Positions 35,561 through 41,900 are shown, numbered from the stretch's first letter. The stretch: 64,000 nucleotides of DNA from Salpingoeca rosetta (GCA_033442325.1 JAWQFM010000020.1:681564-745563), one strand, 5' to 3'. Numbers and translations: made by a program. The notes: generated by a model from the sequence alone, not told the origin.

Positions 35561-38500
35561 CACACGCAACTCTTGCCGTTGTCATCCTTCTCTCCCCTGT
35601 TATAGCCACTCCATCTCTGCCTCAACCGGCACTGCCACGGAACACCAGCATCAGTTTGTGACCGATGCTGCCAGCAGTGGCGCATCCCTACCCGCCCTTG
35701 TCCCGCCAACTGTCGACTTTGGAGACCAGTGCGTTGCCATTGTTCGCATTGCTCTTGTTCAACTTTCATTCTTGTGTTCCCATGCATCGACTGTCGACAA
35801 CAGCCTCCCTTCTGCTTCTCTCCTTGTTCTTGTTCTTGCAACCCTGCACACTGCCCCCCATTGTTGTGTCAAATCGCTCCATGTTGCAGTGCAATCCACG
35901 CTGTCCCTCTCTCTCCCTCTCCCACCCGCTCATTTCACTCTTGTACGCCTCTTACCACTGCCACCCCTCCGCCCGCTCAACTCACACACACTCACACACA
36001 CACACACACACACTCTCTCTCTCGCTCGACAGGCCGCTTTGTCGCGCTGTTCAATCCACAGTTGTTGTCGTCAACGTGAACGCCCGCTCGGAGCTGACAT
36101 TGTTGTCGCTTTCCTCAAAGAGCAACGATGTGCATGCCTCATGGTTTGCGCGCGAGGTCATCCCGCCCGGGGAAAACACCACCTTCTCCATCGTGTTTCT
36201 TGGTCGCAGCCTCGGTCGCAGCGAAAGCACCATCCTCATCAGCACATCCCTCGGCGACCTCAAGTTTGAGGTGAGTCATTCATGCGCGCGCGCGCGTGTG
36301 TGTTAATGCGTGCCTGCGTGGTGTGTGTGTGTGTGCGTATGCTTGTGCTGGTTTCGTGCATATGATGGCCGAGCTTGCTTTCTTTGTGACCAGCCGCCAG
36401 CTAATTGACTGCTTCATCCTCCCCCCCCCCCACCCACACTTGTCCTCGCTCTCGCCCGTCTCAAGGTTACCGGGACGAGCGTGCGCAACCCGAATGGCCT
36501 GCGGCCATACGTTAACGGGCGCATCCCAAGCCACCTTCGTCTGGCTCAACCCATCCTCTTCTACAACCCGCACCCGTTTCCCATCAAGGTGAGCGAGGCA
36601 CACGTGCAACACACCAACGCCAGCACACTCGACCAGCTGCGTGCATGTGTGTGTGTGTGTGTGCATTAACGTGTGCGCACATTTGCATAAATCCCTCGCT
36701 TAATATGTTTGTGAATGCACACAACCCCTCATGGTTGTGCTCCTGCGTGCCTCGCCATCACTTGCCTGTCTGCCTCTGTGCTGTCTATCAAGGTCGAAGA
36801 GGTGCTTTCGAGCACAGAGGAAATTCAGCTTGACATGAACGCCCTCTTCCTGGACAAAACCGATGGCGACGTCCAGGTGCGTGTGTGGGTGTGGGTGTGT
36901 TGGTGTGCCTCGTGTACTGCGTGAGCTCTGTGCCCCATTTACGTGGTGCCAACAATATTTTCTCCACCTTGCTTGAAACTTGTACCCCTGTTTTGGCTTT
37001 TTCCGTTTGCTAGATTTCGGACAAGGTGTGGGAGATTGAGCCATTTCGCATGAAGCCTCTCATTGTCGCCGTGGTCACCTCCGAGGTCAACCCCTACGTC
37101 TCTGTGAGTTGCCATCACCAACGCTGACTCGCCCGCGTACACGTACACGTCTGTGTGTTTGCTTGCATGCTCTTGATTTTGTCTGTGTGTTTATCTGTTC
37201 AAACATCCTCGTGTGCACGCACCACTGCGCGATGACTTAACCTTGTCCAGCAGCCGCTGCATGTGCTGCTTCCCTCCAAGCTTCCCTCCGCATTTCTCAC
37301 ACTCCATGTGGCGTTTTTCCTTGGTCCTTTGGCGATGCGTGTTGTGGGCACAGGGGTACATCAACGTTCGCACAAACCATACGCATGACAACGCCATCAT
37401 CCCCGTGGAGATTGACATCTCCTCAGGTGCTTCCCCGCGTGCTTTTGAACCATTGCAGTTTTGTGCCTTTGTTCGTCCGTACCATATGGTGCATGGGTTG
37501 CTTGTCAGCAAGCCTCCCTTGCTCGTCCACATGACGTTCTGCTCCACTCATGCGTGCTTCGTCTGCCGACGTCAATCCGCTTGCCTCACTCATAACCTCC
37601 TGCCTCCCCTGCGCGCAGATGATGGCTTGTTTTATGGGCCTGGGGACAGCCTTGACTTTTCCATCGTGTACCGGTCCGACCCGCGCCGGCACAGGCCGCT
37701 CCAGCTCCTGTTTAAGGACTCAAAGAGCGTACGTAGCGGAGCGCCTGTGGCATGTCTCACGCCCATGTTCTGGTGTTGCGTGTGTTTGCGTACTGTGTCT
37801 GCACACGCGCGATTGTGGTTTCTCACCCGCTTGACTTGCGTTCCCTCGCTGTTTTGTGTTGCAAACACAGGCGGCGGTGGCCACGATTGGTGGTATCCGC
37901 GTTGTGCGGTGTCACAAAGCCACGGATCCAACCATCAACTGCCCCCACGTCACTGTCCACCACCGTCGCGAGCGTCTTCAGCTCAAGCCATGTACGATGC
38001 CACCACCGTTATTTTGTTGTGGTTCACGCTGTTCACGTCGCGATGGGCGTGTGTGTGTGTGCTGGTGTGTGCCTGATGTTGGACTTGCTTGCCCGTTTCC
38101 CGTTTCATTTTCTTGCCTTGCGGTCTACTGAATTGTTGTTCTGGACTGCTCTTCCTGCTGTCCTCACTCACATACACATACACATGCACGTGTGTGTGTG
38201 GTTTTGCCGTTTTGTAGATGTGTGGAGTCGTGTGGCGACCATCAGCCTTGCGTCTGCCCGGCTTGTGGAGTCGCCTGGTGTGTACACAGGCGCCCTCGCC
38301 GTGGAGTACATCACCTCACGCGACAACTCCAGAACACGCCTGCTGGAGGTGCCCTTCCACATTGACTACGCCGAGGGCTCGCTTGACCTGCCCAACCTCA
38401 ACTCGAGCTTCTTCGTGAGCGGCCCGCCGTTTGAACCAGACACCCGAAGCTTCACCATCCATAACACGCTCCCCTTCCCCGTCAACCTGTCGGAAGCGCG

Positions 38501-38869
38501 TGTGCCCGCCTCAATCTCCAGCATCTTCAAGGTACGCCTATTATGTAATGTAGCTCGTTCACCCGCGACAGCTCATGTTCAACGTGGCTCCTTCCTCTCG
38601 CGGCTCGTTGAACGCGATTCGTTTCTGCCTTTCCCTCTCCCTCTCTCCCTTCCCCCATCTCTCGTTGTTGGGGTGGGTGCACGAGCAATTGATGATAACT
38701 TTACCACATGTTGGGTGACGGAGGCAGGCGTACTCCGGTACCCTCCTTCGATGGACCACCAACACTTAGCTCTAGAATTTCTGATGCGTGCAATCCATAT
38801 CTTTTCCTTGACATGAGTTGTCCTGTCCTCCCTGCCTCTTGCGTTCTCCTCCTCCCCCTCCTCCTCCTC

Positions 38870-38923
<54 letters not shown>

Positions 38924-41900
38924 CTTGTGGCCGTGTGAGGATAACTTTACCACATGTTGGGTGACGGAATGAGCATTTATGTGCGACTTTCGATGGACCA
39001 CCAACTTAAGCTCTAGAATTTCTGACGGCCACTCGTTGAACTTTTGTTGATGTCCGGGCTGCTGACCCACGTGGTCAACGTTTCTCTTTTTACCTCCTGT
39101 GCTTGCTCCTTGCTTGTTTGCACGCACCTAGCTCACACACACGCACGCACACACGCACACGCACACACGCACACGCACACGCACACACCAATCCACAGGT
39201 GTCTGGCTTTGAGCCAACCATCCTGGGGACCAACAAGTCCACCACGCTGGATGTCACGTTCCAGGCCAACTCGTCTGATCTGAACGTGCACTCGAGCGTC
39301 ATCGTGGCAGCTAATGCCAGCGAGGTTCCACTGTCCATCCCCATTTTCAGCTACAACGGCATGCTCAAGTACGCCGTCAGCGATGATGTAAGTACCAGCT
39401 TCAAAAGCCCCCCCCCCCACGCCCCATGCACATACATATGTGCATGTACCCCACGAGCACTTTTCTGCAGCACCACAGACAACAACAACAACTACCACCA
39501 CCACCACCACCACCACCACCACCACCACCACCACTACTACTACTACTACAGCGACAACTACAAACAACAAACAACGCCCGTGAAACTATCCATTGTCGAG
39601 CGAATTCCCACCTGGCATTGGTATAAACACAGGCCACAACAACCACAGCTCTTCAACACCTGTGTTTGCTTGCGGTTCTTGCCGAGAACTGTCAACAGCA
39701 GACCCATGTTGTCGAGCCGTGTACATTCCACACTGGTTGCATTTCTTTCGACACCCAAATTCTTGCCATCTGCAACTGCCTTGCTCCATGCACACACCTC
39801 TTCTTACTCCCATCCTTCGCTGACACACGCTTGTGTTTCCTCCATCCTCTCTTTTTCTTTTTCTTGTAGGGTTACGATGATGTGGCGTTTGGGGCTGTGC
39901 CTCTGGACAACGTGGCGACAAGCCCACTCCGGGTGCTCAACCCCAATCCCGTGAGTGTATCCATGCTGTCATATTCAAGCTCTTTGCCGGAGGTTGGCCT
40001 GGAACTCGTCAACGTGGCGCCGTCTCCAGAGCACATGGAAGTTGTCGAGTACGGGAAGATCTACAGCTCGCACTGGCAAGAGCCCCTCACCAAGGAGTCC
40101 CACACCGACGTGTCTTCGGATCAGGTGCGTGCGCGTGATGTTGCGTGAGCCAACGACGCCACAAGGCTGTCAAGCACTCGAATGGGGACGAACCGCAACA
40201 CATGTGTGCCACAGTGCTTCAAGAGAGCGACAGCACACCCAACATTCCTTGCGAGCAGCCACCACGATTGCACACACAATAGAACAAAACACGAACACAG
40301 TCGCACACACACACACACACAGAAGCGTGCACACGCACACACACAGTTGCACACACAGTCGCATCAACACAAGAGTCACCCGCATGCACGTAGCCACAGC
40401 CGCAGCCATACACACACAACTTACGCTCACACACTTGTTGTTTCTCCTCGCTGATGCGGGTGCATTTGCAGCATGACTTCAACTTGGTGCTGAAGCCCGG
40501 GTACATTGCCACGTTCAGCGTCACCGTGTCACCGAACAAAGGCAAGCACACCGGCAGCCTGGAGCTGCGCTCAACCTACCACAACATCCACGTTCCCGTG
40601 TCCTACGAGGGCGCTCGCCGTGCAATGCAATTTTACCCGACACGCGTCGTCTTCAACGCCAGCTACCCTTGGCAGCTGCTGCTTCACAATGACTACGGCA
40701 TTGAGTTTTCCGAGTCGATGCGGCCCCTCGTCCAGCCGCAGACGGTGCCGCTGCACATCAAGCCTGCGGACCGGAACGTCACCATTGACCGCATCTCCAC
40801 CACCGATCCGCGCGTGGTGCTGCGCCAGAACCCGGCCGTTGTTCGCGGCGTCCGCGCCAACTCCTCCACCAACATCCTCATTGGCCACATTGTGTTCAAC
40901 GCCTCCCTGGGGCCCGAGGAAGACAACTACATGCCCAAGGTGCGCCGGCACTTCAACTCGCTCACCCGCCCAGCCGTGCTCACCCGCGGCGATGTGGATG
41001 AGGTGGTGCGCTGCAACAAGCTCTGGAACACGCTCAGCCGCCGCAGCAAGACGGACGTCGTGGCATACCTGACGCTCGAGGCCAGCGGCGAGAAGCCCCA
41101 CGTCATCGACGTGCAGGCGCCGCTCATGAAGCCGTCCATCCTCTCCACCCCAGACCTCGCCTTTGACCTGACCCATGTGAAGATGACGTCGACCCGGCCG
41201 TTTGTCATCACCAACCCAAGCGACATGCCGCTGCTCGTGACGATTGTGCCCGTGGACGCCATTCCCGACGGCCCCATGATTAGCGCCCTCGAGCAGGCCA
41301 TGGCCGTCACCCACGCCGAACTCAAGTCTGCGCGCCAGCACAAGGGCGTCTTCTTCTCCACGCCATACCCACTGGACACCAACTCCACGGAGTACCTGAG
41401 AGGCTTTGCCAGCGACCGCGTGTCCGTTGGCGGCAGTGCAGCGCCGCGGCGGGCCCACTGCGGCGACGAGTGCGTCGACGGCCTCAATGACAACGCCTTC
41501 TTTCCAGAGGGGGAGGTGCCGGACGACTTTCTGCGCACCGCCCAGAAGACGCGCCAGCTCGCCAGCCCGCACCTCGATGAGTACGACGAGCTGGACGACG
41601 GCACGGGCAACAGCAACCCGGGCGGCGTATCGGACTCTGCCAGGCAGCATCTCACCGCAGCCAGCAACACCAAGCACAAGCTCGCCGCAGCCAGCCTGGC
41701 CCGTGCTCCCCGCGGCCAGCCGCTGGTGCTTGACTTTGAAGGCATCAGTGGTGGTGGCGCCTGGGCCTCCGCTCGCACCGACGGCCACGGCCAAGCTGAC
41801 GAGGACGAGGGCGAGGAAGACGACGAAGCTGATGGACCTGTGCTCGTCCCCGCATCAACCTTCCTTGGCCTCTCGCCAACAGCTACGGAGGAGGAACGCC

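Follow-up and report, generated by a model that had tools for sequence, protein, structure and literature searches.

The locus raises the question of what function may be served by two box C/D snoRNA-like sequences lying in tandem in one intron of a TMEM131-like gene of Salpingoeca rosetta, namely whether they are ordinary guides for 2'-O-methylation of 18S rRNA or, as the initial annotation proposed, a U22-like processing snoRNA outside animals. Within the window (the whole 64,000-nt stretch of DNA analysed, from whose first letter all positions are counted), the intron spans 38532..39198 on the + strand, and is a phase-0, GT..AG intron with the ends aag/gtacgc (5') and cacag/gtg (3') as read from the sequence; its start is thus as first annotated, but its end had to be moved from 39199 to 39198. 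The exons on either side are in frame once joined, and the large exon 3' of the intron matches the Pfam domains Ig_TMEM131L_4 (E 5e-18) and Ig_TMEM131L_5 (E 5e-22), so that the original prediction of a TMEM131-like host gene, as judged from these matches, holds.

Two paralogous box C/D snoRNAs of ~105–115 nt were found in this intron where they had been described, both on the + strand and each with its boxes and terminal stem: copy 1 at 38678..38792 and copy 2 at 38927..39032, with a CT microsatellite between them. Copy 1 has a box C TGATGA (38690–38695; TTGATGA with the preceding T), a box D CTGA (38781–38784) and a 6-bp terminal stem TGCACG/CGTGCA (38678–83/38787–92), the latter supported by sequence and fold. 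Copy 2 has the variant box C TGAGGA (38936–38941), which as GTGAGGA deviates once from RUGAUGA and retains both GA dinucleotides, a box D CTGA (39022–39025) and, again from sequence and fold, a 7-bp terminal stem GTGGCCG/CGGCCAC (38927–33/39026–32). The two terminal stems are unrelated in sequence and pairing is kept in both folds, in flanks that cannot be aligned, in line with the earlier observation that each copy keeps the structure with a different stem of its own. Pairwise alignment revealed three segments identical between the copies, a 29-nt 5' block (GATAAC...GACGGA), a 17-nt central block (TTCGATGGACCACCAAC) and the final 15 nt (CTCTAGAATTTCTGA), while the hairpin apex, guide positions 13–17 and the whole of the flanking intron differ too much to be aligned. 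Both copies fold an internal hairpin (38719–50 in copy 1, 38965–92 in copy 2, + strand), the two being unlike in sequence. Around each hairpin, GTGA (38715–18 and 38961–64) and TCGATGGA (38748–55 and 38990–97), all on the + strand, may represent degenerate D' and C' boxes respectively, because their GA dinucleotides are kept; divergent C'/D' motifs are tolerated in box C/D snoRNAs (PMC3116282).

We then examined complementarity to the organism's own 18S rRNA, which was located by a pattern search that yielded 12 copies with one mismatch to a 20-mer, all reading CGTGGTAATTCTAGAGCTAA, and one more copy with a further mismatch; two 18S copies were confirmed by Rfam as full-length SSU rRNA. When each snoRNA was scanned exhaustively and without gaps for complementarity to 10 kb of rDNA, a single outstanding Watson-Crick match per snoRNA emerged, to the 18S segment AATTCTAGAGCTAA, and this target segment occurs in all the 18S copies that the genome search had found. 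(One of the rDNA copies has N at 8087 of its 10000 bases, and in the others 28S ends or becomes dissimilar after ~650 nt.) The D guide of copy 1, TTAGCTCTAGAATT (38766..38779, + strand), pairs perfectly over 14 nt with 18S 183–196 (predicted duplex energy −20.6 kcal/mol) and that of copy 2, AGCTCTAGAATT (39009..39020, + strand), over 12 nt with 18S 183–194 (−17.2 kcal/mol), bearing out the complementarity to the host 18S that had been claimed. Because the nucleotide at position 2 upstream of box D is the first to pair in both duplexes, the D+5 nucleotide for both copies is 18S U186, the second U of AAUUC and the same U that had been named in this segment.

A chance origin of the main guide match is unlikely on the strength of two controls, spacer shuffles and a survey of CTGA sites across the window. 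Shuffled spacers reached 14 nt against the 10-kb rDNA in at most 1 of 300 cases, and among the 305 CTGA sites that the 64-kb window has on its two strands only the two snoRNAs combined a box-D-adjacent match of at least 12 nt to mature rRNA that was not low-complexity with a box C 86–91 nt upstream, the remaining matches being microsatellite against repeat-rich rDNA spacer. Guide positions 1–12 are the same in both copies, and the overall pattern of divergence between the paralogues, with boxes and these positions kept and hairpin loops and flanks diverged, fits that expected of a guide. We consider it probable, with good confidence, that the locus encodes a canonical box C/D methylation guide for 18S U186 in two paralogous copies arranged in tandem, with a probable accessory pairing that is dealt with below.

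The predicted target falls in a part of 18S that is well known for methylation, the human rRNA being modified at A159, A166, U172 and C174 via SNORD45 and SNORD44 (PMC11550049). Like human SNORD45A/B/C and SNORD44, the S. rosetta copies are intronic box C/D RNAs directed at the same conserved 18S segment, GGUAAUUCUAGAGCUAAUAC; unlike these guides (Am159, Um172, Cm174 and Am166), they have a different D+5 register, and neither the SNORD44 nor the SNORD45 model matched the locus at E ≤ 10. A SNORD45-type match, which had been raised earlier as a possibility, was thus absent when run against Rfam at this threshold, and the target differs too. From the shared motif, in which only one register fits the spacing of the listed sites, U186 would lie two nucleotides 3' of the equivalent of human Am159. 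The equivalent of U186 is not among the human sites (PMC11550049), nor is it a modified U in the tables for Arabidopsis, Dictyostelium and yeast, and we found no mention of Um161 in 18S in the literature. Since no modified U is tabulated there in human, Arabidopsis, Dictyostelium or yeast, the predicted U186 site seems to be specific to this lineage, in a region already known as a hot spot of methylation. Rfam searches of the whole window at gathering thresholds gave no matches; under permissive settings, snoZ103, sn2417, ceN70 and snR40 appeared as generic weak C/D matches, all with E > 0.1, and a mir-297 match corresponded to a CA microsatellite, and all of these were discarded.

Besides the main guide, each copy carries in its 5' spacer the block TTACCAC (38701..38707 in copy 1 and, identical to it, 38947..38953 in copy 2, + strand), complementary to 18S GUGGUAA (178–184), which directly borders the main target and shares 2 nt with the main duplex; the two blocks together span 19 contiguous nt, 18S 178–196. 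The initial annotation had envisaged pairing of an 8-nt block, and the pairing itself stands but over 7 nt, since at the accessory site the host 18S reads CGUGGUAA, with a C where the eighth base would need a U, rather than the UGUGGUAA assumed earlier; all 12 of the one-mismatch 18S copies have CGTGGTAA instead of TGTGGTAA. In copy 1, the candidate D' box follows TTACCAC at a distance of 8–14 nt, so the block is not placed to guide methylation.

Such a bipartite layout had been regarded as unusual for a methylation guide, but it is that of published extra base-pairing (PMC3116282, PMC8053127). Conserved 4–11-bp complements beside the methylation site have been described for 24 box C/D snoRNAs in yeast and 18 in human (van Nues et al., 2011; PMC3116282), and these lie away from D/D', sometimes overlap the canonical duplex by 1–2 nt and can raise methylation up to five-fold (PMC3116282). 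In Arabidopsis, 45 of the 104 assigned sites (~43%) have extra pairs of 7–15 bp, more than half of which are directly adjacent on the substrate, usually with the extra complement in the other spacer (PMC8053127). Like yeast snR75, snR13 and snR76 and human U16 (PMC3116282), the S. rosetta copies have a single active D guide and a short complement in the other spacer, off D', beside the target and with a 2-nt overlap, the 7 bp flanking the predicted methylation site falling within the described 4–11 bp. They differ from those guides (PMC3116282) in sequence and predicted target, with no orthology seen, and in that conservation here is known from two paralogues alone and the accessory role is putative. 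The geometry is sensible, because the rRNA leaving the D-spacer duplex on its 5' side would emerge at the start of the 5' spacer, beside the kink-turn of boxes C and D.

The accessory match is nonetheless suggestive, not compelling, and marginally better than chance: a match of at least 7 nt within 10–50 nt of the target arose in 2.3–5.9% of shuffles of the 19-nt spacer and in 8.5–29% when all non-guide sequence was shuffled. It is accordingly possible, although we are inclined to doubt it, that the RNAs guide methylation of U186 while the TTACCAC match is coincidental, the 5' spacer serving instead a second target (28S, an snRNA or another RNA) or the internal stem GTTGG.TG/CACCAAC. Together with these shuffle frequencies and the C opposite the eighth base of the block, such a reading would be favoured by the fold of copy 2, which uses the stem GTTGG/CCAAC, and by the identity of the entire 19-nt 5' spacer in the two copies, which extends beyond 7 nt and of which the 7-bp pairing and a possible GTTGG/CCAAC stem would explain only part. 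Against it, we found no Watson-Crick complement of the spacer of at least 9 nt in 18S, ITS, 5.8S and the first ~650 nt of 28S, we did not regard G-U-rich matches as credible second targets, and near-complements of the spacer were fewer genome-wide than those of a reversed control pattern. Moreover, the match exactly adjoins the main target, as do more than half of the Arabidopsis extra pairs (PMC8053127). Of the readings that would ask more of the 5' spacer, a dual-purpose RNA that would both guide Um186 and, by clamping 19 contiguous nt within the 5' domain of 18S, serve as a chaperone of folding or processing, or one whose 5' spacer would have a second, non-rRNA target, strikes us as unlikely.

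To these features of a methylation guide can be added RNA-seq reads. We compared two stranded raw RNA-seq runs from the same species (X23 and X24) with positions 38450–39349, and all reads had the orientation of those from the host gene. In X23, all 11 reads fell on 38690–38839 and 38930–39049, the rest of the intron and the flanking exons having no reads, and depth over copy 2 reached 8 within the predicted ends. In X24, exon depth was 7–36 and intronic reads occurred only on 38720–38839. Reads at copy 1 overran its predicted 3' end by ~45 nt, and they may for this reason derive from a precursor or from the excised intron. Given these small totals (11 and 52 reads over the two runs), the reads over snoRNA parts are supportive, not decisive, for expression; standard RNA-seq libraries under-sample 100-nt RNAs. 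In a third run, X19, whose library type is unspecified and which was not counted, the region of copy 1 had 3–13 times the word depth of the exons. Searching sequencing runs with the copy 2 sequence by itself yielded none recorded as RNA.

At the genome level, searching all 55.4 Mb of the assembly as DNA gave only two full-length copies, both in the TMEM131-like intron, and a genome-wide pattern search for the guide with box D gave no further gene carrying this guide. A metagenome scan for the same D guide with box D and box C returned 12 matches, none with a terminal stem or TTACCAC, which look like chance occurrences in unrelated, mostly coding-like DNA and were rejected. The TMEM131 protein led us to a 7.2-kb genomic contig from a related species with AT-rich DNA, whose protein is 49% identical. 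The exon junction is shared (L025:380/711); the orthologous intron of 330 nt (L025:381–710) contains no snoRNA, and none was found on the rest of the contig. The position of the snoRNAs in the TMEM131-like gene is thus not an ancient one, given that the orthologous intron of the related species lacks them. No orthologue was found in the metagenome scan or on the related species' contig, and conservation rests on the two paralogues. Intronic snoRNA clusters, with more than one snoRNA per intron, exist in plants and Drosophila, and the S. rosetta intron resembles these in holding more than one snoRNA, but differs in that it has only one kind of snoRNA, duplicated in tandem to give two copies. 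That either copy, or both, should be a pseudo-snoRNA that is decaying or not expressed, as the variant box C (TGAGGA) and shorter guide of copy 2, the low read support and the snoRNA-free intron of the relative might suggest, is very unlikely, since both have kept their boxes, independent stems and an intact core guide despite fully diverged flanks, and the X23 reads at copy 2 are confined within its predicted ends.

There remains the proposed kinship with U22, whose mode of action is not known (PMC7277114). The SNORD22 Rfam model (RF00099) had no match at the locus at E ≤ 10 in searches with 751-nt and 119-nt sequences, the latter with laxer filters, and its best match in the whole genome, at 20.1 bits against a cut-off of 50 bits, lay on another contig in a CA-rich stretch. 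A resemblance of the 5' end to U22 had been noted, and a short one does exist beside box C, where the SNORD22 consensus reads approximately GAAAC-auu-CAC-au-GUC and the S. rosetta copies GAUAAC-uuuac-CAC-au-GUU, but it does not extend to the rest of the consensus: what is shared is only box C and roughly AAC..CAC.UGU, about a dozen bases with two indels. The 126-nt consensus lacks the ACC needed for pairing to GUGGUAA, and its central blocks and the 3' spacer before box D are unrelated to those of the S. rosetta copies. Thus, like vertebrate U22/SNORD22, the two copies are intron-encoded box C/D RNAs with a few common bases after box C; unlike it (~126 nt), they lack its conserved internal blocks, and whereas U22 is an orphan needed for processing, they carry a methylation guide that is perfect and in register. 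The U22 or processing interpretation is therefore not supported by these comparisons, the suggestion of a U22-like snoRNA outside animals falls with the missing model match and the unrelated 3' spacer, and with it the idea that the locus points to the pre-rRNA binding site of U22, on whose target or evolutionary age the locus says nothing. We consider it highly improbable that the pair is a U22-like or chaperone-type snoRNA that clamps the 19 contiguous nt of the 18S 5' domain in pre-18S processing rather than methylation, a role with which the span of the two blocks, the complete identity of the 5' spacer, the obscure action of U22 and the resemblance beside box C could be reconciled, but which is opposed by the failure of the SNORD22 comparisons, the exact D+5 register of the main duplex and the frequency of bipartite layouts among plain methylation guides.

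Returning to the U186 guide with probable accessory pairing, from what was directly seen, namely motifs, stems, complementarity, copy number and RNA reads over snoRNA parts, we infer snoRNP assembly, U186 methylation and a contribution of the accessory block as follows. Both RNAs would be released from the one intron of the TMEM131-like pre-mRNA, and in each the terminal stem would fold boxes C and D into a kink-turn that binds the core snoRNP proteins. The 12–14 nt upstream of box D would then pair with 18S 183–196, placing U186 opposite position 5 from box D for 2'-O-methylation by fibrillarin, and TTACCAC in the other spacer would probably add 5–7 bp directly 5' of the target, which may stabilise docking.

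Choanoflagellates are the closest unicellular relatives of animals and their snoRNAs have barely been catalogued; our literature search found no dedicated paper on them, and Rfam has no matching family for the present pair. The two copies are a new member, probably lineage-specific, of a well-known class of RNAs and constitute a well-supported new entry for choanoflagellate snoRNAs. Moreover, the predicted ribose methylation of U186 would fall in an 18S segment that is methylated at neighbouring positions in vertebrates, and so would bear on the question of how sites of methylation shift inside a conserved hot spot of rRNA.

The snoRNA-bearing intron of the TMEM131-like gene also contains two simple repeats. 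A (CT)n/CCT microsatellite at 38839-38929 lies between the two copies of the box C/D snoRNA, and the intron's 3' end is occupied by a (CA)n-type repeat (39125-39195), which is the source of a weak, spurious match to mir-297. Across the S. rosetta genome, the highest score obtained with the SNORD22 (U22) model, whose cut-off is 50 bits, was 20.1 bits, at a CA-rich stretch lacking a convincing box C (L008:1501-1624, corresponding to G000:C17:588148-588271 in the assembly), and this match is probably due to chance. In a related AT-rich species, the TMEM131-like orthologue (Logan contig L025:1-2000) shares the phase-0 intron position with S. rosetta, with ~72% DNA identity across the neighbouring exon; the orthologous intron is just 330 nt long and the snoRNA is absent from it.

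Copies of rDNA are scattered across many contigs of the S. rosetta assembly G000 (C3, C4, C7-C9, C14, C22-C25, C30, C32, C35 and C36; loci L003-L007 and L021-L024), frequently no more than ~30 kb from a contig end, and are 90-99% identical to one another, several being partial. One full 18S on C3 has neither 5.8S nor 28S in the next 7.6 kb downstream, and in the C4 unit the match to the LSU model is limited to the first ~650 nt, followed by GT-microsatellite-rich sequence. In one stretch of C9, 8087 of 10000 bases are N.

In run X19, whose library type is unknown and which we excluded from the expression evidence, word depth reached 1500-3500 at the copy 1 region (38632-38838), compared to 116-472 in the flanking exons. 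Adapter-like loose ends at 38690 and 39017 suggest short inserts terminating within the snoRNAs, and X19 may derive from small RNA or from protein-bound RNA.
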